A DNA stretch of 64,000 nt, taken from the NCBI GenBank assembly GCA_950097015.1, contig CATNEN010000001.1, positions 16,368,001 through 16,432,000 of the forward strand, written 5' to 3'. Shown here in pieces: positions 11,278-60,654 of the stretch. Every line of letters begins with the position of its first letter. The stretch's first letter is position 1. A model generated the notes under the pieces. It was not told the origin of the DNA. It saw nothing but the letters and a program-made list of their open reading frames with translations, and ran no database searches. This DNA is from Macrostomum hystrix (Eukaryota > Animalia > Platyhelminthes). The position numbers and the translations under genes are program-made.

Positions 11278-12722
11278 TCAACCATCTGTGGACATCTGTG
11301 ACGGGTCAGTGATTTGTGTCGACATTGGTAGGCCCGACTGAGTGAAGACTGCTGCGCGCCAGTCTCGAATGAAAATTATCTGCGGAAAAGGTAATTTGAT
11401 GAATTTTAATCATTTAACTTCAGACTGTATAGTTTAGAGGTATACTTATTCATACTTATTCAGGCAAACTTATTCGCTAGCGGGCCAAAGAGAGAATCTA
11501 AAAAAACAATTTCTACACATTGACTGTAGAAATAGAAATAGGGGTGATGTGAAACAGACAGAGAAGTTGAGACAGGAACAGATGAGACCGGGGAGAGCTG
11601 AAAGGATATACTGTAGGTGTCGGAAGGGGCAACATGCTCCTTTTCAATCTTCAACATAAATTAAGTTGACGGAGAATTGAGAGCCGCATCTGGTCCGCGG
11701 GCGGAGTTTGACTCAAAGCTCATAGCTCATAGGAAAGAAAAAGGCATACCTCTTTGCCTCGACAACGCACTCGTATTTTATTTATGCTCTCGTAGCCCGC
11801 AAACATGCGGTCGGAGCACTGCAACACAATTTCATCATGTGCAGCTTGGCTCGCATGCTCAGTTGCTTGGGCATGGACACGGACCGACTCGAAGCATTGC
11901 TGGCTGGACAGCGCCTCCTCGAACCATTCCGTCAGATCTGAGTCGTTGGCATGGAGGTGGCTAACATCTGCTTTAGAGCAGTTCAGCGCAACCGCTTGGC
12001 CATACGCTTGGACCTGGGCCCCTTGAATTTCCAAGGTGTCGCCTACGGCCCAGTTGTTCACCTGAGCCGAGCTGTTTGCCCAGAATGTGCAGGATACGGA
12101 GGACGCGGAGTCGTCGACCAGCGTTACTTTGGCCAAGTTGACGGGAGGCCCTCTTCTTCTCTGGACCTCCTTTGGCGGTTCAGTGCTCTCTATCACACCT
12201 CGGATGTCAACTTTCCTGTTTGGGCAGGGCGAAAGTGCACTATTAAGCAGACTGCGTCAGTAATAAAAGACTTGATATATTCTAAAACACTTACTTCTGC
12301 ATGGCAACAGCAGACAGGTCACCAATTTTTTTGTAGACCGCAGGTGGCCGATCCACGCTCTCTTGGGTCGCCATGAGGGTCGCATTCTTGTCTACTGACA
12401 GAGTCATCTCGAACTCGTTGTCAGCAGAATTGTAGGCCGGATTCGCGGACTTCACCCAACCACCAGACACTCGTACAGCGGTTGCGTCTTGGCACAGGTC
12501 GTGGTGATTTTTCAAGTCGCGACCGAAAACACTCACGCGAATTTCCTTCTGGTCATCCGCCAAAACGAAGGAAAACACCTGGCCGTTTCCTTTGGCGTTG
12601 GTGTAGTCCTTGAGCTCCGTCACTCGGGACACCAGGCCGATTACAGCACCGTCCATCAGGCCGGGCACGAGAGCCGCGATGCTCAGCTTGCTCTTCTTCG
12701 GAGTTGTGCTGCTGGTTGCCAT
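11278..12722 (-). CDS. Helitron-borne RPA70-like ssDNA-binding protein (DBD-A + DBD-B OB folds), subfamily 1; exons 12722-12295, 12215-11750, 11379-11278
   Basis: GNGQVFSFVLADDQKEIRVSVFG, VKSANPAYNSADNEFEMT, VDIRGVI and VTLVDDS..VSCTFW match RPA1 DBD-A/B. Three exons splice in frame at GT-AG sites. Confidence 0.88.
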
Positions 12723-13586
12723 TGCTAAAAAGAGAAAAGAAATTGTATGAAAATTTGTTGAAAAAATGAAATGAAAAGTTTGAACGGTTGAAAAACGACT
12801 TAGCTTGAATGCTGATTTAGACAGAGAGAAAGATGGGTTTGAGTTGCAGTTTGACAAGATCAGAACTATAAAAACAGTTTTCAACGGCCATAAAAGCTTA
12901 TCAGTTTTAATTGCTGTACTTGACAATTTGCACCTGTAATTACACTGCGGCGGGGCAGCGGTTTAATTCTTTGTATTATGAAAGCTACTTTAATTTGATA
13001 GCTAATCAATTATTGAGATCAGTCAAATAAAAAACTTTTCTCCTGCAATAACTTATCAGTTTTGATTGGCTGAGCCTGGACTACGTGTACCTGTAACTGT
13101 TCGGACTAAGGTAGGGCAGAGGCTAAAATGGTATGTCAAAACATTGCCTTTTAATCAGATAACAGATAAATTAAGTTGGGAAAGCGAAAATTTTCTACCT
13201 GGCCATGATTCACGATCTAATTTTATGACAAATTAATTACGTTGGAAAAGCTAAACGTTTTTACTTGACCATAATCAGCTCTTAGACCTACCAGCTTTAG
13301 CGGTTGCGGTAAGTCGCCTCATTCTACAGCCAATCAGTAAAGCTCAGTAATAAATCACCACAAAGCTCACCTTTATAACTTAACACCTGATACATGCTGT
13401 ACCTGTTAGATCAAAGTCATTAAAGACTAATTTATGTAATGATAACAGCAAACAAAAATTTCAACCCACCCCGCCAAAACTGCGCTCGTGTGCCCCATAT
13501 AAGAGCTCGTAACAAGGCAGCCGCAGCTAGGCGCACATAAAGCATCATTCAATTTCTTTTTCATTAAGTTCTTTTGTTATTTGAAA
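12723..13586. promoter_or_regulatory. Putative bidirectional promoter between the RPA-like and zinc-knuckle genes
   Basis: Head-to-head ATGs ~865 bp apart. CCAAT/ATTGG boxes (~13074, ~13330), an E2F-like cccgccaaaa (~13469) and catataag (~13496) precede the plus-strand gene. Confidence 0.55.
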
Positions 13587-14068
13587 ATGAAAATTATTAA
13601 TAACGTTTACGGAGGCCTAGTTGACGGACGCCGCCGTCGCCGTGGAGGCCGAAAGGCAAAGAAAAATAGTAAATCTTTTATTTTGCCGATTTTTGTTTTG
13701 TGATCCGCAAGCTTATTTGCATTGAGGTACAACTGTTCATGTTGTTTCTCTCTTACTCAACAGTTAGCTGCTATCTTTGTGCCGGGCCGCATCCGGTCCG
13801 GCGTTGCCCGGCCCTGGCTGAGCAGCGGCAGCAGCAGCAACAGGCACCTCAGCAGCAGCAGCAGCATCATTAGAGAAAGCAGAAAAAGCAACAGCCACCT
13901 CAGCAGCAGCAGCAGCCAGCTCAGAAGCAGAAGCAGCTAGCTCAGCAGCAGCAGCCGCCAGCTCAGCAGCAGCAGCCGCCAGCTCAGCAGCAGCCTTCTC
14001 AGCAGCAGCTGCCGGATTATGAGGACGAAGAAATGTTGCTTCACTTTGCTAGTTGCTTTCCATGCTAG
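13587..14068 (+). pseudogene. Basic/Gly-rich + CCHC knuckle + poly-Q gene, copy 1 (exons 13587-13668, 13764-14068; in-frame TAG at 13871)
   Basis: MKIINNVYGGLVDGRRRRRGGRKAKKN|ISCYLCAGPHPVRRCP-polyQ...YEDEEM. It has a phase-1 intron like the other copies and a premature stop (TAG where the 43-kb copy has GAG). Confidence 0.72.
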
Positions 14069-14136
14069 TGATTTATTTGTGTCAGCAGATTAAACTGATT
14101 TAAACAGATAAATGCAAAATAACAAAAGCAAGTTAC

Positions 14137-15249
14137 TCACATCTGCTCAGCATGTGCTCCAGTGTCAGCACATGAGCTGGGGCTGTCAGCTGGCATCGAT
14201 CTCGGGCCCTTGGCTTTCTTGGCCCTCTTGGCAGGAGTTTCCTGCCAGGCTTGGGAACTCGGCATCTGTAAAGGCTTGCAAATGCTCTTGAAGTCTCGTA
14301 ACTCGTAATGTTCATGGCGCAAGAGCACGCGCACAATGGCATTAGGAGGGTGCATATTAGCCCTGAAATACTGCATCACATTACCATTGGCCTGGTAAAT
14401 GACCAGGTCAACATTAAAGCAGCGGCTCAACAAAGAGGCAACTTCGTCTGAAACATAAGTTCCTGTTTGAAAAGAGGAATTCACAATGTCATCAGCATTC
14501 TCAGGTGCGATGAGGCCATCTGCAACCAACTGTGGCATGAGTTCTGCAACACGGCAAGACAAATCCTGCCGCAAGGAGGCTGCGTCAGTTTCCAGCGAGG
14601 TTCCACGCAGCTGATCACACACAGCATAAAAGAAGCAATTGCAATCACCAATAATAGGGATTACCTGCAACTGCTCAAAGGGTACAATAGCTACCGTACC
14701 TTGCTGCTGGGTGTCAGACCTAAGTTGGCAATGCAGTGAAAATAAAGCACAGCTGCATTTACAGACTTTTTAAACCAATTGTTGGACTGCAGGTTAAATT
14801 ACTCAAATCTACAGTAAAAATCAACACTTATGAGGCGATTTAGAAAATAAACTAAATAAAACCATAATTATTTTATGTAACGTTATTTTATAGAGCCTCA
14901 TAAAACTCACGTGGAAACCAAAGCTCTACGGCGACGAATCTGCTCGGCTTCCAGTCGGGCAGCCCGCTCAGCCTCGGTCTCGGCCTCTGCGCTGAGCATC
15001 TCGCTGCCGCTGTTCCTCCAGTCGGGCAGCCCGCTCAGCCTCGGTCTCGGCCTCTCTGCGCTGAGCATCTCGCTGCCGCTGTTCCTCCAGTCGGGCAGCC
15101 CGCTCAGCCTCGGTCTCGGCCTCTCTGCGCTGAGCATCTCGCTGCCGCTGTTCCTCCAGTCGGGCAGCCCGCTCAGCCTCGGATTCAGCTTGTCGCCGTC
15201 GCTTGGCATCCCGGCTTTTCTTTAAACTGCTTGCGCCGCGTCGAACCAT
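14137..15249 (-). pseudogene. Truncated Helitron RepHel 5' part: STPR-repeat exon + OTU protease exon
   Basis: 23-aa repeats ETEAERAARLEEQRQRDAQRREA. OTU motifs GDCNCFFYAV and HEHYE. Frameshifts are present, and no Rep or helicase exons follow. Confidence 0.85.
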
Positions 15250-17739: not shown

Positions 17740-20700
17740 TCAGGGTGGTCCGTCGGTCGGTTCCGCCGCGCGATCTTCCTCGCCATAGGCTGGGAAGAAA
17801 TCAGCTCGGCCGGTATCCCGGAGGAAGTGGGCGAGCTGAGGGATGTTCTCGGGCGAGCAGGCTTCGGCAAGAGTCGGTGCCGGCCCGAGGTGTTTTAGCC
17901 TAGCCCGGGTGAAGGCCGGGCAGTGGCAAATGAAATGCTCGGCGTTTTCACGGCCGGAGCAGCAGAAAGGACACGTTTCCTCAGGCACGTGGCCTTGGAG
18001 GTAGCGGTGTCTGGTGAAGCAGCCATGTCCCGAAAGGGCCATGGTGACTGCTCTCAGGTCTCTGCGGTTTAGCCTGAGTAAGGCCTTACGCAGGTTACTA
18101 GAGGGGGTTGGCACCGCAGCCCTGGACTGGCGACAGTTCAGGGTGCTGGACCACCTCCTCCGGTGCTGGGTCTCCATCCAGTGGTTGATGCTGGAGTTGA
18201 CAACGGAGGCGGGGATCGGGGATTCCGGGCCCGGGCCCATCAGGGAGCTGGCTGCTCCAGCCTTTGCAAGCTCGTCCGCCATCTCATTCCCTGTGAGCCC
18301 GGCGTGCCCAGGGATCCACATCAGCTCCACCTTGTTAGACTGCGCCAAACCGTTTAACTGGGTGTTGCAGTCCAAGGTGGTTCTGGAGCGAGAGGTGCAG
18401 CGACTGAGGGCCTTGAGGGCTGCTTGACTGTCGGAGTGAAAAAAGATCCTCCGACCAGCCAGCTGCCTCTGGCGCAGCTCAGCCGCACAGAAACTGATGG
18501 CGAGCATTTCGTTTTGGAAAACGCTTGAGCTCTTGCCACAGTGTTGGGAGTGGGTCCAGAGGACCTCGCCACCCGAGGCGACGCACACCCCGAATCCCGA
18601 TTTACCGTTCATCAGGGAGCCGTCAGTGTAACAGTGGACTGCGGGGTCATCCCAGCAGTCCTTTACCTCATTACGAGGGAAGATGCTGACTTTGTACCTG
18701 TGGCTCCGGAGTAAAGTGGCCGGGGCCCCGTCCGAAAGGATGGTGAGCCCTCCGCACTCGCCCAGAGTTTTCAGGCAGAGGTCAGAGTGGGGCAGAAGGG
18801 AGCGCTTCGAGAAGGCTCGCGAATTCTGGAAGGATACACCCGCATCAAGGAGACGACGGGTGGACTTTGCCGCTTCCCCCTTAACAAAAATGTCAATGGG
18901 TGTAGCGTTGAGGAAAGCGTTCATGCCTTCAAAGGGAGTGGAGGGTGGGGCGCCCAGCGTCATGCGACAGGCTCTGCCCTGCACCCTATAAAGCGCCTCC
19001 AGGTTTTTCTGGATGCTCATGGCACTGGCCCAGATGAGGCCAGCGTAAGCGACTGACGGTCTAATGATCGCCGTGTAAATCCACCAAAGGTTTTTGGGGG
19101 TAAGCCCCCAAGTGGTGCCCACGGCTCGCCTGACTTGCGCCAGAATGGCCAGGGCCCTCTTGGCCTTTGTGGTAATGTGCGGGGTCCAGTTAAGCCTATG
19201 GTCTAGCAGGATACCAAGGCACCGGACCTGCTTTTCCATGGCAATATTCTTGCCATAGAGAGTCAGAGGCTCAATGGTCCAGCGCAGCCTGCTGGTAAAC
19301 ATAACCGCAACGGTCTTGGACTCAGAGAGTCGGAGCCCGCATTGGTCCGCCCAGCGCACCGCCCTGTTGATAAAGCCCTGAATGAGGTCCCTGGTGGTTT
19401 CCGCCGAGGGGCCCGCGCAGATGGCGGTCACATCGTCGGCATATCCCACCTTCAGGACTGGGTCAGGCCGAGTGCTTTTTAGCAGCTCATCCATGACGAG
19501 ATTCCACAGCAGTGGGGTGAGGACGCCACCTTGGGGCCCTCCTTTTAGGACAGGTGCCGAGAGCACTCTGCCTTCGAGGTGGGCCACCACGTGGCGATTC
19601 CGGATCATGTACATGACCCAACGGACGAGGTGGGGGTGAGTGGCCCTGGAAACCAGGGCCTTCTCAAAGGCTTCGAAAATAACGTTATCGAAGGCCCCCT
19701 CAATATCAAGGAAAACAGCCAGGGCAAAACCGCTGCCCAGCACTGCCTTCTCGAGAGTCTCCACAATGCAGTGGAGGGCGCTCTCCGTGGACCGGCCCGC
19801 CCGAAAGGCGTGCTGGTTTGGTGAGAGCGGGGCCCGCCCTAGCTCTACAGTAAGAAGGCGCCAGAGCACCAGTCTTTCCATGAGCTTGAGGCAGGTGGAA
19901 GTCAAGCTTATCGGGCGATAAGACTTGACCGAGCGATAGTCGCCTTTGGCGGGCTTCGGGATGAAGACGACCCGGGCTTCATGCCACCGCGCTGGTACGT
20001 AGCCCAGCACGATGCAGGCCCGTAGAAGTCTGCAGAGGAGATGGAGGAAGCGGCCATTTTTAACCGCTTCATGCAGAAAGGCCGGATATATACCATCTGG
20101 CCCAGGTGCTTTAAAAGGATTGAATGACTTAGCCGCGCGAACGATGCGGTCATTCGTAACGAGTGACTGAGCCAGGCCCTGACCTCCACGCGAGTGGTCG
20201 TCTGGGCCGAAGTGCGCCGGTACACTCGGGAAGAAATGCCCTAGCATAAGCTCGAGCGTTTCCTCCGGGCGCTCAGTGATCGAGCCGTCCGGCTTTTTAA
20301 TCGATGAGAGCTTGGAGAAGCGGTCGTTGGTGAGCGCCTTTACCACGCGGGCCGTGGGCCGCGAGCCCTCAAGCCCTTCGCAGTATTGTCGCCACTTGTC
20401 CGCTTTTGCCCTTCTGACCCGGCCCTTAAACTCATGGATGGCGCGAGTATAGGCCTCTTTGTCATCAGGGTCGTGCGAGGTTTTCAGCTTCCTCTGGAGA
20501 GCCTTAGCTCGGCGTCTTAGGACTCCGAGCTCGGGGTTCCACCAGGGGGCCGATTTTTTGCCTTTGTAGGCTTTGAGCGGGCAAGCCATTTCGTAGGCCT
20601 CTGTGATGGCGCCGCCCAGCAGGGCAGCCACTCCATCCAGGTCCTGCGTGGTTTCCATGGCCATGGAGGGGTCAGAATCCCGAAGGCCCTCATGCAGCTT

Positions 20701-21444
20701 TTGGCTGAACGCGGGCCAGTCGGTATTTCTGACATTACGCCTCCAAATAGGCTTTTGCTTCTTATCGGGGGTGCCGATGTTGAAACGGATGAAACGGTGG
20801 TCCGAGAGCGAGCTTTCGGTCTCCCACACCTCCCACCCCAGCATCCTTGGGAGGATGCCGGGTGAGGCCAGGGTGACGTCAAGCACCTCAGCCCACCGCC
20901 CATTGTCGAAAGTGGGCGTGTTGCCCACATTGCAGAAGTTTAGAGGCGTGCCGCTGACGAAGGCCAGGAGCTCTTCGCCGCGGTCATTGATTTTTGAGCT
21001 ACCCCAGTGGGTGTGATGCGAGTTTACATCTCCCGCGAGGAGCAGCTCGAAGTTTCGTGCCCTGGCGAATTCACAGAGGGCGACGAGGGTATCGCTAACC
21101 ACGGGGGCGTCGCCTGCCAGGTAGGCGGATGCCACGAGGGTCAACTTGTTAGGCACAATGTGTGCAGATTGGATGACGCAGATGTCCCCGTTAGAGAGAT
21201 CGGGTCTCATCCACGCATTTAAGGCTTTTGCGGCATAGATCAGTGATCTAGGGCGGACAGAGTCTGCCATGCAGAAGCAGTCATAGCCAGCAGGAATGTT
21301 GCTTGGCTTGTTCTTTGATAACCAGGGCTCCTGCACAAGTACAAGGCCCGGCATCATGCGCTCTGTCGTGCGCATCAGATTGACTGATGCTGCCACGCAG
21401 TACTGGGTGTTAACTTGCAGACATGATATTCCGGGGATCATCAT
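17740..21444 (-). CDS. LINE ORF2: AP endonuclease, reverse transcriptase, RNase H, C-terminal CCHC finger
   Basis: VQEPW, GDVNSHH..WGS and SDH (APE). [26 protein letters not shown] and YADD (RT). YTDGS and [16 protein letters not shown] (RNase H). CPFC...[10 protein letters not shown]. Confidence 0.96.
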
Positions 21445-21456
21445 GCAGGCAGAGGT

Positions 21457-40678: not shown

Positions 40679-42097
40679 TTACTCGTCCATGAAATCATGT
40701 GTTGGTCCAGGCTTCTCGGACTCATTGGGAGCCTTAGGGGTTGACATAGCCGGGATCTGCTGACTTCTGTAGACTTGATCTCGAGAAAATGTGACCTGTA
40801 AAATGAAATTAACATAAACTTATATTTTTTCTTTTATTCTAAAATAAACCTCAACTTTAAGGATAAGAGGCCTCATTAAACCGGTTAATAGCAAAGAAGT
40901 TAATTTTAATGATGAATCTAAGAAGTCAATAACTTAATGCTACTTCAGTAGCCTCTGACACCATGTTACTATTTAACGCATACATAATAAAACCAAATTA
41001 CCTCTTTGTCTCCAAAGCGCACTCTAATTCTTCGCACCTCATTGAATTGTTTGAACATTCGCTCTGGGTACTGCAATACCATTTCGTCGTCATGGATAGC
41101 ATTTTTCTCCCGCTGGGAGCTTTGCGTCACGCGTATCTCCTCGAAGCACTGTTGGCTAGAAACGGCATCCTTGTACCACTGGGTAATGACGGAGACATCA
41201 ACAGAGTCTTCTGGCCAATGCTGAATTTCCGCTTTTGAATATCCGAGACTGATTGTCTGGGAATATTCCTGGACTTGAGCACCATGAATCGCTAGAACGT
41301 CGCCCACAGACCAGTCATTCACTTGGGCAGAAGAGCTGGACCAAAATGTGCACGACAAGGAAGACCCGGACTGATCAAAAAGCGTCACTTTTGCCAGGTT
41401 GACAAGTTTTCCGAAACCGGTTTTAACTTCCGTTGGTTTCTGGACAGCAGAAATCGTGCCATATACGTTAACATTCCTGAGATATGTCATGCAAAGGGTG
41501 AATTAAAAAGTATGCATTAACTCATTCACTAAGCACTTCTGTTTCTTCACTGACTGATTTAAATAAGTTTCCCTAGAAATAGTTCGCTAACCTAACAATC
41601 AAAATATATGATACATGAATATATATTCCACATCCTTTCCATGTTATTTTTAATTGCAACAAGCAAACTTACATTTTCATTTCACACTCCGAAATCTCTT
41701 TTATCTTCTTATAGCTCGGTGCACGTCGAGTGACGGTCTCGAGGGTCCTCACAATGGCTCCACTTTGGTCAATTGAAACTGTTAGCTCGTGCTCATTGTC
41801 CGTAGTGCTGTACCTGGGATCCGCCTTCTTCACCCAGCCGCCGGATATGCGGACGGCCACGCCCTCACGGCACACGTCTAGGAAAGGCTTAAGATCCTTT
41901 CCGAACACGCTTACACGAATATCGCCGGTGTCGTCACAGAGGATAAAGGAGAACACTTGGCCTGGTCCTCTTTTGCCTTCAAAGTCCGTGATTTTGGACA
42001 GCCTCATTACCAGGCCAACGATCGCAGCGTGCATCAGGCCCGGAAGCAGAGCAGAGATACACACTTTGCTTTTCTTGGCTCCTTCGCATGACTCCAT
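40679..42097 (-). CDS. RPA70-like two-OB protein, subfamily 3; exons 42097-41673, 41476-41002, 40795-40679
   Basis: GPGQVFSFILCDDTGDIRVSVFG, VKKADPRYSTTDNEHELT and VTLFDQSGSSLSCTFW. Same intron positions and phases as copy 1. Ends ...HDFMDE*. Confidence 0.88.
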
Positions 42098-42943
42098 ATT
42101 GCTCGATTGTTGATTGTCAAAAATATAGATGATAAATTTCACAAATAAGTCCTTTATGGCTTGTAGTTTGATAGTTTCAGCATCAAGGCCAATTGTGCAA
42201 GTTTTTATTGACCCATTTCGGACAACCCCAAATCTGATGACTCATATCAATGGCATGATTCGGTGCTAATTGAGGGTGCCATGTAAAAATCAATAATAAG
42301 ATCTGGCTAACCAATCAGAAAGAGTTTTGTTCTGCAATTTTCTTATCCACCCACTGGGCTACTTGTTGTGGATTGGATGGTGATTGCCTTAGCTGTTACA
42401 TTGCTATTTTATGTACAGTGTCGGGTGTCAGAGTCGATTATGGTGCGACTTGTTATGCAATCTGTTTTCGACACACTTTAATAATAGAACACCAAAACAA
42501 TCTCATATGCACAGTGTAATTGGGGCGCCAGTGCGGCGTGTGGCTAAAAATAGAGGTTTTCAAGTCAGCCAACAGCAGTTAGCTGCATTCATTTAAAGTG
42601 CTTTCATTTAAGTGCCCGTGCCAGACCCACCCTAGTGAGACGGTTCAGTCATCACCAACAGCTAAAGCCTCATGAAGCTTACCAATGAAGCCTCACCCGA
42701 TTTTAACTGGGGTTGGGGTGGCCCTAAGCTGGTAGTCATTTTTGACCAATAAGAAACGGGCTTTAATAAAAATGAAATGAGTTTCGTTTGGTTTGCAAGG
42801 CTTTCAAACCAATCTCGCTAATTCTTGCTTGGCGTGAGTGCGCGTATATAACCCAGAGCCTAAAATATATTCTTCCATTCATCCATTCATTCCTCGCAAT
42901 CCAATCCAATCCAATTTGAAAAAAATTCTAAACAATTAAAGAA

Positions 42944-43179
42944 ATGAAATTCACCAAAAATTTCTATGGCGGCGGCGGGCGGTGTGGAGGCCGTGGAGGC
43001 CGTGGCGGTGGCCAGCGTAAACCAAGTAAGTCTCATTTCTAAGTCTCATTCTCGTAATTACGTCTTTCGAAACCACCTGTGGAGTAAAATTGCACTTTGC
43101 CAAACTTAACAGTGGCCTGTTATCTCTGCGCCGGGCCCCACCCCGTGGCCCGCTGCCCGGAGCTGGCTGAGCTGCGGCT

Positions 43180-43221
<42 letters not shown>

Positions 43222-43459
43222 GGAGCAGCATCTGCATCATGAGCGGCAGCAGGAGCAGCAGCTGCATCATGAACGGCAGCACGAGCAGCAGCAGCAGCTG
43301 CATCATGAGCGGCTCCAGAAAAAGCAGCAGGCACCTCCGCAGCAGCAGCATCATGAGCGGCAGCCACCTAAGAAACAACCGCCACCTAAGCAGCCAGCCA
43401 AGCAGCAGCCAGCCAAGCAGCGGTCGAATGAGGCGGAGGACGAAGAAATGTCCTTCTAA
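42944..43459 (+). CDS. RGG + CCHC zinc knuckle + poly-Q/His protein with acidic tip, intact copy (exons 42944-43025, 43113-43459; 142 aa)
   Basis: MKFTKNFYGGGGRCGGRGGRGGGQRKP|MACYLCAGPHPVARCPELAELRL-polyQ/QLHHERQ repeats-NEAEDEEMSF*. Donor gtaagt, acceptor ttaacag, and TATA box tatataa at ~42845. Confidence 0.8.
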
Positions 43460-44667
43460 TTTGTTCGGTCCATAATTTGACTTCCAATTCAGTCAAAAAA
43501 GTAAAAAAGTAATTGTTTAGAAAAATAAAAAGTAATAACTTGCAACTATATTTTGATTAATTGATTCTCTTTTGTCTTCAATTTGATTTCAGTGACAATA
43601 ATATCATTAGTGAGGTGGGGGTTGGGCAGATGCTCCTGCAGAAATCGCCACCAGCAAGACCAGAAACCCTGTACAGTTTGATCAAATAGATCTATTCCCA
43701 GGTGTCAGTCTTTCTGCTTGCTGGCTTCAAGTCCGCATGGGAGATTGAATTTGAGAAGTCAATATTAGTAAAATAAGAAATGCAGCAATCAATCCACTTT
43801 AGGCCAGTTGATTCGTCAAACTCATTCTCACATACTTCAGTGACAATGAAATCAGTAGTGAGGTTGGTTGGGTAGATGCTTCTGCAGAAATTGCCAAGAT
43901 TATCGTACAAATTTTTATTCAAATATATTTTCATCATGATGTTATAAGATAACAAAATCAAAGTGTAGAGAATTCAATTCAATTTACAATAACATTACAG
44001 ACGACAAATTTGCAGAAGGCTCCGCCAACAAGACAGTATCATTGCACAGATCATTGCATTTGACTGCAAGAATAATGGTGTCAATCCTACTGCTTGTTGG
44101 CTTGCTATACTCTGCACTGCTGGTCAGAGGCATTCACTGGGGCAAGTTAAGTTCACGCACTCAACATCACACAAAAAGCTTAGCTATCAAAAGTCTCTAG
44201 GTTTGCTGGAGCTGCTTCAAACCTCTCAATGGCTGCATACCCTCAGTTTTAGAGTGGAAGAACCTCTGAATCGTGAAGAAGCAGCGAACACATTATTTCA
44301 ACCACTCTCTCAAGGCCCATTGATATGCAGCCAACCTGCTTTATTTACCTATTATTTACCTAAATTAATTTCACAATTGCATAACTAAATTATGATCATC
44401 GCATAGCTACATAAATTCATAAGGCTCATTGCATAGTATAAGGATTAGTACCAGGGGTGTCCGTAAAGTCTTGAAACTTTTCTGCTTCGGGTAAAACTTT
44501 TTATCTACTGCAACAAAACATGCAACATATGTTTGCGGCGCAACTGTGTAAACTTTAAGTGCAAAAATGGAAGCACTATTGTTAAAACCATAAAAATGCA
44601 TGCCCATATTAGTGCAAAGGTATCTAGTGTTACCATGCAGAAGTTAGGAATACGTAGCGAATTCGGA

Positions 44668-46201
44668 GCCTTCAGGCTCCGAACGTAAAGGTTGCACTCA
44701 TGAAGCAACGTCTGTAGCAGCTCCTGTAGCTCTGGCTTCACCCTATCGCTCAGACTGCTGGCTTTCGAGTTCGCGGTCAGTAAAGTACACCTGCCAGCCG
44801 CGAGGAACAGCAGACGCTTCAGCAAACAGCGGCATAGCAGTGTGGTGCAGCTGACCGCTGATGATGTAGCTAGGATTCCAGCCTGGCACCAACCGCGGCT
44901 TGGCAATCAGCGAGGTCAGGTGCAGCACAGAGTTATAGCTCCGGATGTTGGTCAGGAACTCTGAGCTCATGCCGTGCCGGCCAATGTACAGGTCAGCCAG
45001 CAGCTGTGGCACAGTCCGGGTGGGCAGCTTCACCTTGCCTCCAGCACAGCATAAATTGCCTGTCTCCATGCGGAACAGCTTGGCACCGCAATGGTTGCAT
45101 GCCCAGTCCATTGGCCCGCAGTCATGGGCTGGAGCTTCTGGCCTCGCCATCGTCTCAGGCCTGATAATAAAAATGGAATGTATCTCTTAGTAACTGTTAA
45201 ATGTAAATGTAACTGTTAATCTTGTGTCAGTTTAACTTGCAGTAGCGGGTCCGTCTTCAGCGCGGCCCGCAGTCTCATGTTCCGCCGGCATCGCGCTGGG
45301 GCCCTTGGCTTTCTTGGCCCTCTTGGCAGGAGTTCTGCTTGCTGCCAGGCTTGGGAACTCAGCATCTGTAAAGGCTTGCAAAGGCTCTCGAAGTCTCAGT
45401 GACTCGTAATGTTCATGGCGCAAGAGCACACGCACAATGGCATTAGGAGGGCGCAAATTAGCCCTAAAATACTGCATCACATTACCATTGGCCTGGTAAA
45501 TGACCAGATCCACATCAAAGCAGCGGCTCAACAAAGAGGCAACTTCATCTGAAACATAAATTCCTGCTTGAAACGAGGAATTCACGATCTCATCAGCACT
45601 CTCAGGTGCAATGAGGCCATCTGCAATCAGCTGTGGCATGAGTTCTGCAACACGGCAAGACAAGTCCTGCCGCAGGGAGGCTGCGTCAGTTTCCAGGGTT
45701 CCACGCAGCTGATCACACACAGGATAAAAAAAGCAATTGCCATCACCAACAATGGGGATTACCTGCAACTGCTCAAAGGGTACAATAGCTTCTGTACCTT
45801 GCTGCTGGGTGTCCGACCTAAGGGGCAATGAGTGAACGTAAGCACAGCAGCCTTAATTGGCTTTTTAAGACAATTCATTCCTCAAAAATCGTTGTCCGCT
45901 TAATTTATACAGAATAAAATAGATACTACAAATTATCCCCTTCAAGGCAATTCAGAAAAAAAAATAAAGACTTGTTATAAAACGGCCATAAAACTCACCT
46001 AGAAACCACAGCTCCACGGCGACGAATGCGATCGGCTTCCAATCGGGCAGCCTGCTCTGCCTCAGTCTCAGCATGTCTGCGCTGAGCATCCCGCTGCCGC
46101 TGTTCTTCCAGTCGGGCAGCCCGCTCTGCCTCGGATTCTGCCTGTCGCCGTCGCTTGGCATCGCGGCTCTTCTTTAAACTGCTGGCGCCGCGTCGAACCA
46201 T
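44668..46201 (-). pseudogene. 3'-truncated Helitron RepHel (STPR, OTU and zinc-finger exons)
   Basis: Close paralogue of 35660-37407. Homology stops abruptly at ~44667 after NLYVRSLKA. Confidence 0.9.
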
Positions 46202-46689
46202 GATTGAGAAATGAGAAGCGAAATGAAATAGTTGAGAAAGAATGATATGGTTTGAAAGATAAAAGTTTGTGAATTTGGATGTCTGAAGAATCAGATAAGG
46301 CGCCCTTTAGCCAAACTAATTTGCAGGCTTTTTATCATCCAGTGGGCTGAATTGGAGCTTATCTTAAGACGCAGGGTAAAAACTGAAAAATTGATAAAGA
46401 AATAGGGGTCTAAATCTAAAAAACCTATGATTTGGGGTGTGGGCTCTCCAGGCCCGTTTGTCCACATTCCGGGGCAGAGGGCTCGCAATGTACACTGGTC
46501 TGCGCCAGCCAGTGAGAAAAGCTGTGATGTAATCTATTTATAAATTCGCAGACTGTCTCGCCAGTGGGGTTGACACAGTTATGTACATTTGACACACTGA
46601 AATTCTTATCAGTGTTATAACCAGTATCACTGATATAAGTGATATCATTAATATCAGTTATAATCAGTATCACTTTTAAAAAAACTGGC

Positions 46690-47757
46690 TTTGGAACTCT
46701 GGTTTAGCCTTGATTCAAACTCTGGTTTAGCCTTGATTCAAACTCGGGTTTAGCCTTCATTTAAACTCGGGTTTAGCCATGATTCAAACTCTGGTTTAGC
46801 CATAATTCAAACGCTGGATTAGCCATGATTGAAACTCGGGTTTAGCCTTCATTCAAACTCTGGTTTAGCCATGATTCAAACTCTGGTTCAGCCATGATTC
46901 AAGCTCTGGTTTAGCCATGATTCAGACGCTGTTTTTGCCATGATTCAAGCTCTGGTTTATCCATGATTCAGACGCTGTTTTTGCCATGATTCAAACTCTG
47001 GTTTAGCCATGATTCAGACTCAGGTTTAGCCATGATTCAAAGTCTGGTTTAGCCATTATAAAAATTCTTGTTTAGCCGTGATTCAAACTCTGGTTTAGCC
47101 ATGATTGAAACTCTGGTTTAGCAATGATTCAAGCAATGTATATCAATTCTCAGCTTAGAGTTCTGTCGATTTTGAGCCTAAATATCCTAGGTCTGTTATT
47201 GCTGAGCCTAAATTTCTATTAAAAGTTAAGCCTAGATATGTATCGATTCTAGTAATTTTTTAGAAACAGTTTTTAATGAGTCAAAAGTATTTTTAGCAGC
47301 TAACGATCTTAAGTATTTAAAAAATTAAAAATTTTTTAGTTTTTTCTGACGCCCATATAAAATATTTCAATTTATTGTTAGAGATAAGGATTTGTTATCA
47401 GTTGTTTCATTGTTTTCACTGTTTCTGGTTTAGCCATGATTCAAACGCTGGTTTAGCCATGATTCAAACTCTGGTTTAGCCATGATTCAAACTCTGGTTT
47501 TGCCATGATTCAAACGCTGGTTTAGCCATGATTCAAACGCTGGTTTAGCCATGATTCAAACGCTGGTTTAGCCATGATTCAAACGCTGGTCTAGCTATGA
47601 TTCAAACTCTGGTTTTGCCATGATTCAGACGCTTGTTTAGCTATGATTCAAACTCTGGTTTAGCCATGATTCAGACTCTGGTTTAGCCATGATTCAGACT
47701 CTGGTTTAGCCATGATTCAGACTCTGGTTTAGCCATGATTCAGACTCTGGTTTAGCC
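46690..47757. repeat. 23-bp minisatellite type A, two blocks (46690-47132, 47425-47757)
   Basis: Period 23 (ctgg at 47701, 47724, 47747). Confidence 0.94.
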
Positions 47758-48380
47758 GGTGTTCTATGATTTATGATATTTTATTTACGAAATGAAAAAA
47801 ATAAATTAAAATAGTCTTCAATCACTACTGGCTGAAAATTAGTCTAAATGATTTGACGCAGTGCAGAATCGAACCCTAGCCTAGCCTAACTTATTCCTAG
47901 TGCCTACACATCGGCTATTCCGACTGTTGGTTAGTGGGTGCAAAAATCAGCCTTATAAAATGAATTCTCAAAGCTCTGGCTTTGTACAATGAAGTAAGAA
48001 AATAGAGTACACTCAGTCTCGCGGTTGGTTGTGTACATTTATTTCCATTTTGTCTCCAGAGTGCAGGCTTCAAATTCAATCAGCTAGGGGTTGTTGCGCA
48101 ATTTGACGATGCAATTCTAATTCAGTGGCTGTCAGTGAAATTCTCAATAGGCCAAGATGGTTTGACCTTTGAAAAATCATGTTTTTCGAATATTTAATCC
48201 CCTTAGCAATGAAGTTAAGCTTAATAAAAATACGTGTATAATTGTCCCCATATTTGGCGTCTTTTAGTGAAGAAATAGTAAAAATCGGTTGAGCCGTTTA
48301 AAAATCGATCGCGCATACATATATATATATATATAGTTTTCATTTTCAGTATATATTTTTATTTATTTTTAGTATATAGA

Positions 48381-48720
48381 CTAGCTGCCTTCGCTACCCT
48401 CTGGGTAGCCTCCCTGTGAGTTCTTATCAGTACGCGCGTGCGTTATCAAAACTGGCTCTGATGCAATCATTAAATTTGGCACTGGAGGCCTCACTGTGCA
48501 CAAGCTGAAAACAAGAATGCATTAGAAAAGCCTATTTAAAACAGTTTTTCGAATATTTAATCCCCTTGGCAATGGAATTAAGCTTAATAAAAATACGTGT
48601 ACCGATTCCGGCCCATTTGTGATCTTTTGGCGAAGGAATTGTGAAAATCGGTTGAGCCGTTCGGGAGCTAGTCGATTGCAAACAAGCAAGCAAGATTTTC
48701 ATTTTTAGTATATTAGAAGA
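48381..48720 (-). mobile_element. Mini-Helitron 1 (340 bp)
   Basis: 5' TCttctaatatactaaaaatg, (gctt)n microsatellite, aacggctcaaccgattt motif. 3' hairpin GCTACCC-AGA-GGGTAGC followed by CTAG. Confidence 0.88.
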
Positions 48721-49057
48721 CTAGCTGCCCTTCGCTACCCTCTGGGTAGCCTCCCTTGAGTTCTTATCAGTACGCGCGTGCGTTATCAAAACTGGCTCTG
48801 ATGCAATCATTAAAATTGGCACTGGAGGCCTCACTGTGCACAAGCTGAAAACAAGAATGCATTAGAAAAGCCTATTTAAAACAGTTTTTCGAATATTTAA
48901 TCCCCTTGGCAATGGAATTAAGCTTAATAAAAATACGTGTATAGTTGTCCCCATATTTGGCATCTTTTGGTGAAGAAATGGTGAAAATTGGTTGAGCCGT
49001 TCGGGAGAAAATCAATTACGAACAAGCAAGCAAGATTTTCATTTTTAGTATATTAGA
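48721..49057 (-). mobile_element. Mini-Helitron 2 (337 bp), head-to-tail with mini-Helitron 1
   Basis: Same termini, with a CTAG|TC junction at 48721/48720. Confidence 0.88.
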
Positions 49058-49523
49058 TTTTCATTTTTAGTATATAGATTGAGCCGTTTAAAAATCGATC
49101 GCGCATACATATATATATATAGATAGTTTTCATTTTTAGTATATAAGTTTTTATTTTTAGTATATAGAAAGAATATTTGTCTAAATTTTTTCAAGCTTTT
49201 GCTTGCAATTTTCGCACATGAAACGCTCAATTATTTTTAGCCATAATATATCTGCACTGAATTGTCTTTAACGAAAATTGTTATATTTTAGGTGCTAGTT
49301 TTTATATGCTTCAGCTTTTGACTGGTAATAATCTGACTAAATGGCTTTATGGCACTTGTTTTAAAGGTTTTTAGTGCCACTGTAACAGGATTTGAACTGA
49401 TATGCCTTCCATGGGCCCATGGTGTTAAACACCATTTACATATCAGGTGGCTCAACTTGTGCTGGCTTCACTTCAGGCACCTCAGAAGTATGCAAAAAGA
49501 ATTCATACCGCTAAATGTGCTCC

Positions 49524-50979
49524 TCAACCATCTGTGGACATCTGTGACGGGTCAGTGATTTGTGTCGACATTGGTAGGCCCGACTGAGTGAAGACTGCAG
49601 CGCGCCAGTCTCGAATGAAGGTTATCTGCGGAAACGGGTAATTTGATGAATTTTATTCATTTAACTTTAGACTGTATAGTTTAGAGGTATACTTATTCAT
49701 ACTTATTCAGGCAAACTTATTCGCTAGCGGGCCAAAGAGAGAATCTAAAAAACAATTTCTACACATTGACTGTAGAAATATGAAATAGGGGTGATGTGAA
49801 ACAGATAGGGAAGATAAGACAGGAAAAGCTGAGACCGGGGAGAGCTGAAATGATATACTGTAGGTGTCAGAAGGGGCAACATGCTCCTTTTCAATCTTCA
49901 AGATAAATTAAGTTGACGGAGAATTGAGAGCCGCATCTGGTCCGCGGGCGGAGTTTGACTCATAAAGCTCATAAACTCATAGCTCATAAGAAAGAAAAAG
50001 GAATACTTCTTTGCCTCCACAACGCACTCGTATTTTATTTATGCTCTCGTAGCCCGCAAACATGCGGTCGGAGCACTGCAACACAATTTCATCATGTGCA
50101 GCTTGGCTCGCATGCTCAGTTGCTTGGGCATGGACACGGACCGACTCGAAACATCGCTGGCTGGACAGCGCCTCCTCGAACCATTCCGTCAGATCTGAGT
50201 CATTGGCATGGAGGTGGCTAACATCTGCTTTAGAGCAGTTCAGCGCAACCGCTTGGCCATACGCTTGGACCTGGGCCCCTTGAATTTCCAAGGTGTCGCC
50301 TACGGCCCAGTTGTTCACCTGAGCCGAGCTGTTTGCCCAGAATGTGCAGGATACGGAGGACGCGGAGTCGTCGACCAGCGTTACTTTGGCCAAGTTGACG
50401 GGAGGCCCTCTCTTTCTTTGGACCTCCTTTGGCGGTTCGGTGCTCTTTATCACACCTCAGATGTCAACTTTCCTGTTTGGGCAGGGCGAAAGTGCACTAT
50501 TAAGCAGACTGCGTCAGTAATAAAAGACTTGATATATTCTAAAACACTTACTTCTGCATGGCAACAGCAGACAGGTCATCAATTTTTTTGTAGACCGCAG
50601 GTGGCCGATCCACGCTCTCTTGGGTCGCCATGAGGGTCGCATTCTTGTCTACTGACAGAGTCATCTCGAACTCGTTGTCAGCAGAATTGTAGGCCGGATT
50701 CGCGGACTTCACCCAACCACCAGACACACGTACAGCGGTTGCGTCTTGGCACACGTCGTGGTGATTTTTTAAGTCGCGACCGAAAACACTCACGCGAATT
50801 TCCTTCTGGTCATCCGCCAAAACGAAGGAAAATACCTGGCCGTTTCCTTTGGCGTTGGTGTAGTCCTTGAGCTCCGTCAGTCGGGACACCAGGCCGATTA
50901 CAGCACCGTCCATCAGGCCGGGCACGAGAGCCGCGATGCTCAGCTTGCTCTTCTTCGGAGTTGTGCTGCCGGTTGCCAT
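49524..50979 (-). CDS. RPA70-like two-OB protein, subfamily 1, copy 2 (Helitron unit D, ~49170-52606)
   Basis: Nearly identical to 11278-12722. All three exons are open and the splice sites are intact. Confidence 0.88.
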
Positions 50980-51847
50980 TGCTAAAGAGAGATCAAAGAA
51001 ATTGTATGAAAATTTGTTGAAAAAATGAAAGGAAAAGTTTGAACGGTTGAAAAACGACTTAGCTTGAATGCTGATTTAGACAGAGAGAAAGATGGGTTTT
51101 AGTTGCAGTTTGACAAGATCAGAGCTATAAAAACAGTTTTCAACGGCCATAAAAGCTTATCAGTTTTAATTGCTGTACTTGACAATTTGCACCTGTAATT
51201 ACACTGCGGTGGAGCAGCGGCTTAAATCTTTGTATTATGAAAGCTACTTTAATTTGATAGCTAATCAATTATTGAGATCGGTCCAATAAAAAACTTTTCT
51301 CCTGCAAAAACTTATCAGTTTTGATTGGCTGAGCCCGGACAACGTGTACCTGTAACTGTTCGGACTAAGGTGGGGCAGACGTTAAAATGGTCTGTCAAAA
51401 CATGGCTTTTTAATCAGATAACAGATAAATTAGTTGAGAAAGCGAAAATGTTCTACCTGGACATTATTTACGATCTAATTTGATGACAAATTAATTACGT
51501 TGGAAAAGCTAAACGTTTTTTACTGGACCATAATCATCTCTTAGACCTACAGCTATAGCGGTTGCGGTAATTTCGCCTCATTCTACAGCCAATCAGTAAA
51601 GCTCAGTAATAAATTACCGCAAAGCTCACCTTTATAACTTAACACCTGATACATGCTGTACCTGTTAGATCAAAGCCATTAAAGACTAATTTATGTAATT
51701 ATAACAGCAAACAAAAATGTCAACCCACCCCGCCAAAACTGCGCTCGTGTGCCCCATATAAGAGCTCGTAACAAGGCAGCCGCAGCTAGGCTCACATAAA
51801 GCATAATAAAATTTCTAAGTCCTGCAGTTCATTTTTCTTGTTATAAA

Positions 51848-52103
51848 ATGAAAATTATAAATAACTTTTATGGAAGCCCGGTTGGACGCCGCCGTCGCCG
51901 TGGAGGGCAAAAGGGAAAGAAAAATAGTAAGTTTTTTATTTTGCCGATTTTTGTTTTATGTGATCCGCAAGCTTATTTGCATTGAGGTATAACTGTTCAT
52001 GTTATTTTTCTCTTACTCAACAGTTACCTGCTACCTTTGTGCCGGGCCGCATCCGGTCCGCCGTTGCCCGGAGCTGGCTGAGCAACGGCAGCAGCAGCGG
52101 CAG

Positions 52104-52139
<36 letters not shown>

Positions 52140-52151
52140 GAAAAGCAGTAG
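51848..52151 (+). CDS. Basic + CCHC knuckle + poly-Q gene, copy 3 (exons 51848-51926, 52024-52151; probably shortened by CAG>TAG)
   Basis: MKIINNFYGSPVGRRRRRGGQKGKKN|ITCYLCAGPHPVRRCPELAEQR-polyQ. The in-frame TAG lies within the CAG run, and an in-frame EEEEEE tract follows downstream. Confidence 0.68.
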
Positions 52152-59514: not shown

Positions 59515-59544
59515 TTTTGACTTGGCTGTGTGGATACGTTAGTG

Positions 59545-60645: not shown

Positions 60646-60654
60646 GACGTTGAT

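Follow-up and report, generated by a model that had tools for sequence, protein, structure and literature searches.

The HELIANO catalogue (PMC11417382) and earlier reviews list canonical Helitrons (HLE1) that have RPA, OTU, and STPR as accessory domains. As characterized there, their RepHel transposase combines Helitron_like_N with PIF1, their ends consist of a 5′ TC and a 3′ hairpin followed by CTAG, and an RPA-like gene lies downstream of RepHel and an OTU-like domain upstream, all of which is also true of the Macrostomum hystrix elements described here. No zinc knuckle appears among the 20 “stably included” domains named in the main text of PMC11417382, where the words “zinc” and “CCHC” do not occur. 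Maps of Helentrons and proto-Helentrons draw hypothetical extra ORFs of 218–266 aa (PMC4067079, Figure 5), which are likewise small, recur in some rolling-circle transposon families, and accompany RPA and OTU.

The clade of A/T-type HLE1 elements examined here differs from the described HLE1 Helitrons in having a constant third small gene, separately transcribed and antisense, and an RPA reduced to a two-OB mini form. On balance, the best overall explanation is that these Helitrons contain three transcription units. The first would be an OTU-like RepHel transposase gene; the second, on the same strand and downstream, a three-exon mini-RPA gene predicted to encode ~338 residues with two OB folds; and the third, on the opposite strand between them and head-to-head with RPA, a small knuckle gene with a predicted product of 95–145 residues. 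Such a Helitron group carries a transposase, its own single-strand-DNA-binding protein, and a selectively maintained knuckle gene. The knuckle gene is real, part of the Helitron, and held by selection. It is invisible to standard domain scans, and we could not find such an accessory described for Helitrons; the Helentron ORFs belong to HLE2 elements of other taxa, have no zinc knuckle described, and are set apart by description only.

Five RPA-like OB-fold genes lie on the minus strand of the 64-kb window (the whole stretch of DNA analyzed), at 11.7–12.7, 24.6–25.8, 40.7–42.1, 50.0–51.0, and 62.5–63.5 kb, as identified by Pfam (REPA_OB_2/tRNA_anti-codon), ORFs, and self-BLAST. A plus-strand CCHC-knuckle gene is situated ~0.85–1.1 kb from the RPA start in four of these five units. 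The original prediction had counted four RPA/knuckle units; its four pairs are confirmed, but the RPA total is five. Because four of the only six CX2CX3-4HX4C matches in six frames of the whole 64 kb fill the predicted slots (13769, 27798, 43118, and 52029, all plus strand), the co-location is far beyond chance. The remaining two matches belong to the Gag of a BEL/Pao retrotransposon. The distance between RPA and knuckle ATGs is 865 bp in unit A, 847 bp in C, 869 bp in D, and about 1.1–1.3 kb in B.

Unit C lies in an internally deleted Helitron derivative (38557–48381, minus strand) delimited by its termini, self-BLAST, and collinearity with the genomic copy L003. Along the minus strand, the 5′ TC (48381) is followed by a leader, 23-aa repeats, OTU, a Zn-finger region, a deletion of the Rep/helicase core, the antisense knuckle gene, the RPA gene, a 3′ region, and the hairpin with CTAG, which at 38557 abuts the 5′ TC of the B element at 38556. 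The mini-RPA gene (40679–42220, minus) is supported by Pfam, by spliced RNA contigs with GT..AG introns, and by its frame and stop. Its coding exons (42097–41673, 41476–41002, and 40795–40679) encode about 338 aa with two OB folds, and its transcript extends to at least 42220 in RNA contigs from runs of three studies. The knuckle gene (42845–43529, plus; predicted protein of 142 aa) has a CCAAT box, a TATA box at 42845, 99 nt upstream of the ATG at 42944, and an AATAAA at 43524, 65 nt past the stop. Exon 1 (42944–43025) encodes MK..N[FY][FY] and an RGG box; beyond a phase-1 intron (43026–43112), exon 2 (43113–43459) encodes the CX2CX3HX4C-P knuckle, a Gln-rich tail, and an acidic end. The RepHel remnant (44743–46201, minus) includes Arg/Glu/Ala-rich repeats, an OTU-like domain (45232–45828), a Cys-rich N-terminal region (44743–45150), and two introns visible in RNA (45161–45235 and 45816–45996).

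Units A, D, and E are copies of one family, 94–98% identical, so that the window contains three independent versions of the arrangement rather than four. The unit A RPA gene (11720–12722, minus; exon 1 12291–12722, exon 2 11720–12196; Pfam) is, at the DNA level, 94% identical to that of D and 96% identical to that of E by self-BLAST. Its knuckle partner (13587–13873, plus; exon 1 13587–13668, exon 2 13764–13873, intron donor GTAAAT) is truncated by a premature stop at 13871–13873, and the 3′ end of that gene directly faces an OTU-like RepHel remnant (14137–14670, minus) whose core is deleted. Unit D pairs an RPA gene (49977–50979, minus; ORFs, Pfam, self-BLAST) with a knuckle gene (51848–52151, plus; exon 1 51848–51926, intron 51927–52023, exon 2 52024–52151) whose truncated ORF is cut at 52151; homology with unit A stops at 52167. 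The unit E RPA gene (62519–63521, minus), absent from the original prediction, is 98% identical to that of D, and its knuckle lies about 565 bases beyond the window end (C1:16432565). Three units had been credited with RepHel sequence, of which A and C keep only the 5′ part (repeats, OTU, and Zn-finger region). OTU-like regions are present, but their Pfam hits are sub-threshold (E 0.06–0.18); an STPR domain receives no confirmation from Pfam, although 69-nt (23-aa) repeats do exist.

Genome-wide, all 32 real knuckle copies lie 0.6–2.9 kb from a Helitron RPA gene, divergent every time, and none is free-standing. A 33rd hit proved on inspection to be without the CCHC. Conversely, of 20 fetched loci whose RPA is at least 63% identical, 19 have a divergent knuckle ~0.85–1.0 kb upstream, the knuckle His being mutated in one of the 19. 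The RPA side can be 91–92% identical where the knuckle side is 67–70%, with the break ~100 nt upstream of the knuckle ATG. Recombination reshuffles the knuckle gene relative to RPA, and this speaks against the two proteins having co-evolved tightly.

The gene has CCAAT and TATA boxes in its promoter, a polyA signal, and a single phase-1 intron (GTAAGT...ACAG). The predicted two-exon structure stands for units A, C, and D, where the models have a common phase-1 intron with ends GTAAGT/GTAAAT...ACAG, but not for B, where no exon 1 start codon could be found. The intron, of 71–130 nt, is unalignable between subfamilies, whereas the ATG context, RGG box, phase-1 intron, and knuckle are conserved, and the promoter-intron-knuckle layout is constant over at least six sub-lineages with near-saturated synonymous sites. 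Natural intronless copies occur in four lineages (L002/5/14, L003/4, L008/9, and L027) and match, base for base, the spliced form that was predicted: removing exactly GTATGT...TTAAG from the intron-bearing sister L028 gives the L003 sequence, which reads ...RRPMACYLC, the predicted spliced product. RNA contigs from runs of three studies bear out the introns of RPA and OTU-RepHel, but not that of the knuckle gene; none of those partly covering the knuckle region (about 43018–43591 in unit C, i.e., exon 2 and the 3′ end) spans a splice joint of that gene, and one apparently still includes the intron. As the contigs are unstranded, this coverage could be antisense read-through from RepHel.

The unseen splice would suit a non-coding block, either cis-acting DNA (an RPA promoter or enhancer, or a RepHel binding site) or antisense RNA, in which the ORF is incidental, as would the short, mostly low-complexity ORF without a Pfam hit and the lack of any such protein among 5.8 billion predicted proteins. 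Such a block is highly improbable given that substitutions cluster at third codon positions of the plus-strand frame, that intron loss preserved the frame exactly, and that every otherwise undisrupted copy has the same four metal ligands and the same Pro after them while neighboring residues vary. Within the knuckle segment, variation affects all 22 third codon positions, compared with 11 first and 12 second positions. Between pairs, dN/dS is 0.10–0.46 (pS 0.3–0.85), and synonymous sites are near saturation between subfamilies; across six independent pairs of the 30 codons on which the test rests, dN/dS is 0.29 (Fisher p = 4e-8), indicating purifying selection.

The same data bear on a neutral-cargo reading, in which a Gag or host fragment was captured a single time and has since been carried between needed parts. 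Helitrons often capture gene fragments, and the main text of PMC11417382 presents accessory domains as thought to derive from old captures; the closest sequence matches are Gag-like knuckles, and many knuckle copies are broken (A, D, L001, L015, and L020). This already disfavored reading is nonetheless very unlikely in view of the selection on near-saturated sites, the fact that each sub-lineage keeps promoter, start, intron sites, and CCHC ligands even though intron and flanks cannot be aligned, and a genome-wide search that found no parent gene elsewhere. The original prediction that the third gene is not random cargo is upheld by its exclusive, divergent placement beside Helitron RPA genes, by purifying selection, and by the architecture kept across sub-lineages.

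Unit B departs from this pattern. Its RPA-like gene (24658–25798, minus; two OB exons) is ~30% identical to that of unit C, is unique in the genome, and has as nearest kin a family without the knuckle gene. The accompanying CCHC gene (27228–27938, plus) encodes Pro/Tyr repeats and a basic helix in exon 1 (to 27477) and, after a phase-1 intron (27478–27789), a canonical CX2CX4HX4C knuckle and Arg/Ser tail in exon 2 (27790–27938). It is not the gene of the other units, is poorly supported, and sits on a chimeric element, although the same intron phase and near-identical intron position suggest that it is possibly a very distant homologue of the A/C/D gene. Its one other genome copy (L036) is diverged and in tandem with an RPA gene, not head-to-head. 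A layout spanning three very different RPA subfamilies was therefore an overstatement: the A/D and C knuckles are clearly homologous, but B has a different CCHC gene. The unit B RepHel region (30937–38556, minus; Pfam, tblastn mapping) contains Helitron_like_N (34563–34997) and PIF1 helicase (30937–32673) with a satellite interruption (33987–34436). Because this RepHel is 95–97% identical to RepHels with the ordinary cassette and the homology ends right after its stop, we regard the element as a chimera. Recognizable termini had been predicted around both B and C; C has both ends, but B has only the 5′ TC at 38556, its 3′ terminus having been sought and not located. The related family L025 has RepHel and RPA but no knuckle gene, and several distant RPA families lack it too, so Helitrons in general do not need the gene to transpose.

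The knuckle protein begins with a conserved MK-x3-N-[FY]-[FY], followed by a Gly/Arg (RGG) box, a single knuckle of consensus C-[YF]-L-C-[AG]-G-x-H-x-[VI]-x-R-C-P, and a Gln-rich tail. Neither this tail nor the C-terminus is conserved, and only the A and C types have an acidic tip. No Pfam model detects the knuckle. Searches of other species found no homologue outside the M. hystrix genome, so the gene may be a lineage-specific addition. Its knuckle probably goes back to either a Gag-type knuckle of a retroelement or an eIF3g-type knuckle of the cell. Among solved structures, the profile matches the eIF3g zinc knuckle best (PDB 2MJC, E 0.007), which has identical CX2CX3HX4C-P spacing and Gly, Arg, and Pro positions in common. 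However, eIF3g, a translation factor of 320 residues, contains an RRM, and since the similarity is limited to ~20 residues, no orthology is implied. In a library of 1.8 billion proteins, the sequences that match most closely are Gag-like knuckles of the same spacing (C[FY]xCxGxHxxxxCP), and the second knuckle of the window’s BEL/Pao Gag has the CX2CX3HX4C variant. Nucleocapsid knuckles of BEL/Pao and of plant and metazoan Gag-like proteins are similarly single, short CCHC knuckles flanked by basic residues. Unlike Gag, the Helitron protein is only 95–145 residues long, carries an RGG box and Gln-rich tail, resides on a DNA transposon, and has no capsid domain, protease, or reverse transcriptase nearby.

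CNBP/ZCCHC-type and LINE ORF1p-type chaperones, whether products of mobile elements or proteins acting on them, bind single strands and join RGG or basic stretches to CCHC knuckles and a helical region that self-associates. CNBP has seven canonical CX2CX4HX4C knuckles and ORF1p proteins have RRM/CTD domains; we propose a functional analogy only. By this analogy, the most likely mechanism, advanced tentatively, is that this small protein binds single-stranded nucleic acid in a zinc-dependent way, much as retroelement nucleocapsid, a CNBP-type protein, or LINE ORF1p does. Together with the element’s RPA, it would act on the single-stranded Helitron intermediate, perhaps by coating it, remodeling the terminal hairpin, or aiding circle formation and re-integration, with the Gln-rich tail supplying self-association. 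An RGG box plus a knuckle is equally compatible with RNA and DNA binding, and RGG boxes, CCHC knuckles, and Gln-rich tails are typical of granule-forming RNA-binding proteins. The protein might instead aid expression or anti-silencing rather than DNA transposition, binding its own mRNAs (export, translation) or small RNAs, or scaffolding a transcript-shielding condensate. Its domain composition, the translation factor origin of the nearest solved knuckle, and the dispensability of the gene in the sister family, as for a modulator, accord with this role, which we consider unlikely: RNA and single-strand DNA binding are inseparable from sequence, and the fact that the gene is always paired with an SSB gene is at least as consistent with a role at the DNA intermediate.

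Because direct repeats of 1.1–1.2 kb bracket the cassette, it may have entered the element by fusion of two tandem Helitrons. Specifically, a non-autonomous RPA-knuckle Helitron positioned head-to-tail behind a RepHel-only Helitron would have been fused to it by a junction deletion, which is conceivable, if somewhat doubtful. This reading concerns origin and is compatible with the three-gene explanation. The repeats on both sides, comprising the 3′ subterminal region and a 31-bp satellite, are 98.7% identical in L003 (494–1716 vs 5383–6606) and 96.2% in L002 (982–2106 vs 5238–6340), and a 5′-leader-like fragment adjoins the inner one. CTAG|TC head-to-tail junctions are common here, a RepHel plus RPA family without the knuckle exists, and in the B element the same RepHel is linked to another cassette. 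Against this, the analysis identified no RPA-knuckle Helitron that stands alone and has a 5′ end of its own, and the high repeat identity may reflect gene conversion or recent duplication. The inner repeat also lacks the last ~525 nt carrying the hairpin and CTAG, which implies that the present elements move as one unit.

Five sets of RPA-type OB-fold open reading frames lie on the minus strand of the window: units A (11.7-12.7 kb), B (24.6-25.8 kb), C (40.7-42.1 kb) and D (50.0-51.0 kb), and a further one, unit E (62.5-63.5 kb), that is absent from the original prediction. All five match REPA_OB_2 (27.5-37.6 bits, cut-off 27), with tRNA_anti-codon OB matches in the preceding exon. Self-BLAST places A (11117-13916), D (49363-52167) and E (61905 to the window end) in one family, 94-98% identical, and sets B and C apart from it. 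On the minus strand of the unit B region, Pfam identifies Helitron_like_N (PF14214, E 4.7e-36, 34563-34997) and a PIF1-type helicase (PF05970, E 4e-19), with Pif1_2B and UvrD_C_2 helicase pieces in 30937-32673; these are the HUH Rep and PIF1-type helicase that make up RepHel, the transposase gene of a canonical HLE1 Helitron. In units A and C the Rep/helicase core is deleted, and what remains of this gene is its 5′ part.

The element ends have the canonical HLE1 form as well, with a 5′ TC and a 3′ CTRR preceded by a subterminal hairpin. On the minus strand, a hairpin and CTAG at 38557 abut a TC start at 38556, and perfect 7-bp hairpins with CTAG-TC junctions occur at 48381 and 48721. The unit C element extends from 48381 to 38557, collinear with genomic copies, and its cassette (the RPA gene and its head-to-head zinc-knuckle partner) is flanked by Helitron termini as predicted. 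For unit B the 5′ TC was located but not the 3′ terminus, and the 3′ ends of units A and D were likewise not found. The Helitron ends seen in the window adjoin other Helitrons head-to-tail (hairpin, CTAG, then TC...ATACTAAAAAT; minus strand, 38555-38560, 48379-48384 and 48719-48724), and the 340 bp between two of these junctions imply a mini-Helitron. Repeated 5′-leader motifs are found at 49051-49163 and 61571-61705.

An OTU-like domain and 23-aa repeats are located upstream of the Rep/helicase region. OTU (PF02338) is the top or only Pfam match in three copies, at sub-threshold scores (E 0.06-0.18, 12.7-14.4 bits, cut-off 23.3), and GDGNCFFY and HYE motifs are visible in the region. The repeats had been labeled STPR; no frame piece tried matches that family in Pfam at E 1-10, and they agree with STPR only in their 69-nt period, as measured by self-BLAST. 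The RPA protein contains the tandem OB folds DBD-A and DBD-B of an RPA70-like SSB. In unit C its spliced coding sequence spans ~338 aa, ending 38 codons into exon 3, which leaves room for two OB folds only; the N-terminal DBD-F and the C-terminal zinc-containing DBD-C of RPA70 are missing, and the description "mini-RPA" is apt. Its protein-atlas neighbors are Helitron-type RPA/DUF223 clusters, and a homologous-protein search with RPA exon 1 returned no matches. With OTU upstream and RPA downstream of RepHel, the window's elements share the layout that HELIANO reports for HLE1 Helitrons (PMC11417382).

A six-frame scan of the whole 64 kb yields six CX2CX3-4HX4C matches. On the plus strand, four of them (13769, 27798, 43118 and 52029) lie 0.85-1.3 kb upstream of RPA starts, in the slots where a small knuckle gene had been proposed; the remaining two fall within a BEL Gag. 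With only six matches in 64 kb and four of them in those slots, the co-location with RPA starts is not due to chance. The plus-strand gene models of units A, C and D (the RGG type) begin with an ATG in a conserved MK-x3-N-[FY]-[FY] start followed by a Gly/Arg box, and a phase-1 intron interrupts them (donor GTAAGT, with GTAAAT in unit A; 3′ end ACAG). The knuckle, C-[YF]-L-C-[AG]-G-x-H-x-[VI]-x-R-C-P, stands at the start of exon 2, and a Gln-rich tail follows it. The unit C gene, with a CCAAT box, has its TATA at 42845, ATG at 42944, intron at 43026-43112, stop at 43459 and AATAAA at 43524, predicting a protein of 142 aa; RGG-type proteins measure 95-145 aa and consist of RGG box, knuckle and Gln-rich tail. 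The C-type protein terminates in an acidic tip, EDEEMSF (43400-43459), and a read-through frame in unit A (14040-14080) would have a similar acidic end; the tails of other subfamilies are basic or Gln-rich, which shows that the tip is not conserved.

For comparison, 36 loci (denoted by L and a number) were fetched from the same genome, with ten short stretches among the sequences retrieved; 20 RPA loci, including the C38 family and one A-type copy, fall outside the whole-locus sample. Single exons and natural intronless copies standing in for the spliced product served as queries, and exons were joined solely to check frame and stop. Among the 20 loci with an RPA exon at least 63% identical to that of unit C, 19 have the knuckle gene at the same position and equally oriented; in one of the 19 the His is mutated. 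Intron length ranges from 71 to about 130 nt, and between subfamilies the intron is unalignable, whereas the flanking codons align. Four lineages are intronless, the RGG box continuing in frame directly into the knuckle. One such copy, L003, equals its intron-bearing sister L028 minus exactly GTATGT...TTAAG, is otherwise identical, and reads ...RRPMACYLC, the product predicted for splicing. A spliced mRNA is expected to leave just such a loss, precise to the GT/AG borders, and we read it as strong, though indirect, support for use of the intron.

RNA contigs from four public runs in three studies were aligned to 40600-46200. The contigs are identified as RNA by minus-strand joints that have GT..AG ends, and the 93-95% identity of the aligned contigs indicates that they derive from other copies of the family. 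Introns of the RPA gene (41672-41477 and 41001-40796, after cut shifts) and two in the OTU-RepHel gene (45161-45235 and 45816-45996) are seen in RNA, a single 1449-nt contig spanning three RPA exons. The knuckle gene is covered by unstranded contigs from about 43018 to 43591 in each of the four runs; no knuckle splice joint is reported among the contigs of these runs, and one contig appears to include the intron. Because the contigs are unstranded and carry no such joint, expression of the knuckle gene is plausible at most.

The codons themselves bear on whether the conserved block is non-coding or the gene neutral cargo, and they speak against both. Across 16 distinct sequences of a 22-codon knuckle segment, third positions vary in 22 of 22 codons, first positions in 11 and second positions in 12. 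Pairwise dN/dS in this segment is 0.10-0.46 (pS 0.3-0.85). Over 30 codons, 8 from exon 1 and 22 from exon 2 with each exon counted separately, six phylogenetically independent pairs have pS 0.38, pN 0.14 and dN/dS 0.29 (Fisher p 4e-8). Every copy that is not otherwise disrupted retains the four ligands and the Gly, as well as the Arg and the Pro that flank the last Cys. A minus-strand Ala-rich ORF overlapping the knuckle region (42951-43367) was considered as the real gene and set aside, as the codon-position pattern and the intron frame fit the plus strand only. We are confident that the knuckle gene is genuine.

Its association with the Helitron RPA gene extends genome-wide. A six-frame search of the 220-Mb assembly with the 48-residue N-terminus of an intronless copy detects knuckle matches at 33 places; 32 lie 0.6-2.9 kb from an RPA exon-1 match and are divergent in every case, as anticipated for a dedicated partner, and no free host copy is found at the sensitivity of this search. 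The 33rd, an orphan weak match at C1:15706545 (C1, contig CATNEN010000001.1), has no CCHC on inspection and was discarded. Nineteen RPA matches, mostly of distant types, have no knuckle gene. In the element at L025, with a RepHel 42-61% identical to the window's, RPA follows after 1.8 kb with nothing between. These knuckle-less cases indicate that the gene marks one Helitron clade and is not a general requirement.

Unit B stands apart. Its RepHel shares 95-97% protein identity with those of elements carrying ordinary cassettes (L002, L005 and L016), and DNA homology ends at 30928-30935, directly after the RepHel stop; the downstream DNA is unrelated and carries the B cassette. The unit B RPA is unique in the genome, 30% identical to that of unit C and nearest to a knuckle-less family. 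Its CCHC gene also differs, with Pro/Tyr repeats, a basic helix, a phase-1 intron (27478-27789), a canonical CX2CX4HX4C (2-4-4) knuckle scoring 13.6-18.2 bits against zf-CCHC (Pfam cut-offs 20.8-27), and an Arg/Ser tail. A second, diverged copy at L036 (exon 2 54% identical) shares the helix, the intron phase and the donor (GTAAGTCT) and resembles it at the C-terminus (LIDN vs LIDI); these shared features make the B-type gene a gene family as well. The intron precedes the first Cys by three codons in the B type and by two in the RGG type, an intron position that hints that the two types may be very distantly homologous. No start codon was found for exon 1 in either B-type copy, and at L036 the CCHC gene sits in tandem behind the RPA exon, not head-to-head. 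Given the different gene, an exon 1 in which no start codon was found and the tandem arrangement at L036, we do not count unit B as independent confirmation of the layout, and the proposal that it holds across three RPA subfamilies is overstated.

The RGG-type gene has no zf-CCHC match (PF00098 and relatives) in Pfam even at E 10, because its spacing is CX2CX3HX4C (2-3-4), not 2-4-4; this also explains why domain catalogs would miss it. The knuckle instead has the eIF3g-type or Gag-variant form CX2CX3HX4C-P, with C, C, G, H, C and P invariant in copies not otherwise disrupted and the Gly placed two residues beyond the second Cys. The best solved-structure match of a profile of the conserved part is the zinc-binding domain of eIF3g (2MJC, E 0.007), which has the same spacing and trailing Pro, and the second knuckle of the BEL Gag in the window is also 2-3-4. 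Retroelement Gag carries a capsid domain N-terminal to its knuckle; the Helitron protein, by contrast, comprises RGG box, knuckle and Gln-rich tail only, and Pfam detects no Gag or capsid family. A profile search of 1.84 billion representative proteins returned 25 weak matches, Gag-like or RGG/knuckle proteins with C[FY]xCxGxHxxxxCP, and no orthologue among them. A homologous-protein search with a natural intronless protein found no relatives, the protein atlas gave nothing above 0.77, and the knuckle protein as a whole has no relative in either. A metagenome scan produced one contig encoding a Gag-like protein, unrelated to Helitrons. Knuckles of this type are known to bind zinc and occur most often in retroelement Gag proteins; for the Helitron protein, zinc binding is predicted from the motif. 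No description of a zinc-knuckle gene in Helitrons was found in the open-access literature; we regard the gene as a real, undescribed accessory of an element class that is itself well known.

The accessory genes of Helitrons, such as RPA and OTU, are usually viewed as old captures of unknown use and have been cataloged through Pfam scans of ORFs; such scans overlook the knuckle gene on account of its splicing and of a knuckle spacing that fits none of the Pfam models. Within one genome, to which the finding is so far confined, the gene displays the clearest functional signs of any part outside RepHel: element-exclusive linkage, fixed position and orientation, purifying selection and precise intron loss. 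As to its role, we are moderately confident at best. The protein may bind single-stranded nucleic acid through its RGG box and zinc knuckle and self-associate through its tail, and the most likely role, which we put forward tentatively, would be that of a nucleocapsid-like chaperone for the Helitron single strand, alongside mini-RPA. An RNA-directed role in expression or anti-silencing ranks next and is somewhat unlikely. If the protein does handle the single-stranded intermediate, it would offer a concrete handle on how the peeled strand and circle are protected and processed, an unclear step of Helitron transposition, and would suggest that the RPA gene does not act alone. Helitron Rep is related to the Rep of Rep-encoding single-stranded DNA viruses. 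It is conceivable, and highly improbable, that the nucleocapsid-like protein and mini-RPA coat and compact the single-stranded circular intermediate as a rudimentary genome-packaging module; such a module would represent a functional step between transposon and these viruses and a possible aid to horizontal spread.

On the element strand of full elements, RepHel is followed by a 31-bp satellite and then by a 1.1-1.2-kb segment; next come the antisense knuckle gene and RPA, after which both the satellite and the 1.1-1.2-kb segment recur, and a further stretch of about 0.5 kb leads to the hairpin-CTAG end. RepHel and the knuckle gene have no additional conserved coding block between them. The two long segments of one element are 96-99% identical, so direct repeats and 31-bp satellite arrays bracket the RPA-knuckle cassette (L003, 494-1716 vs 5383-6606; L002, 982-2106 vs 5238-6340; oriented with RPA on minus). 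A 125-140-nt 5′-leader-like piece adjoins the inner segment. Together with the bracketing repeats, this piece suggests that the cassette entered via fusion of two tandem Helitrons or by duplicative capture; head-to-tail Helitron junctions are frequent here. Several copies are mosaics, 91-92% identical on the RPA side and 67-70% in the knuckle gene, with a break about 100 nt upstream of the knuckle ATG (around 4656-4674 in L003, L011 and L002). This common breakpoint indicates that cassette halves have been reshuffled between subfamilies. The elements also display their own assembly: repeat-bracketed cassettes, swapped among near-identical RepHel genes and recombined at the promoter. Three copies (L008, 3308-3649, minus strand; L009; L032) have a duplicated knuckle-gene start and a chimeric 5′ end, in which the MKINHNYY... 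leader of one subfamily is fused in frame to the front of another subfamily's MKFTQNFF... start.

Other elements share the window. A BEL/Pao LTR retrotransposon (53187-59875) has an intact 1997-aa Gag-Pol ORF and two 316-bp LTRs (53187-53502 and 59560-59875) that are 100% identical; it sits inside a tandem satellite (52699-53187 and 59876-60654), and together these features point to a very recent insertion. Inside the remains of the unit A Helitron lies an apparently intact, GC-rich (about 60%) LINE on the minus strand (17740-23016), in which a 519-aa ORF with no Pfam match precedes a 1234-aa ORF encoding endonuclease, reverse transcriptase and RNase H. A satellite with a 23-bp period occurs at 33987-34436, 46691-47132, 47424-47757 and 60657-60974, within the RepHel region of unit B and, inverted, in other elements' 5′ leaders.
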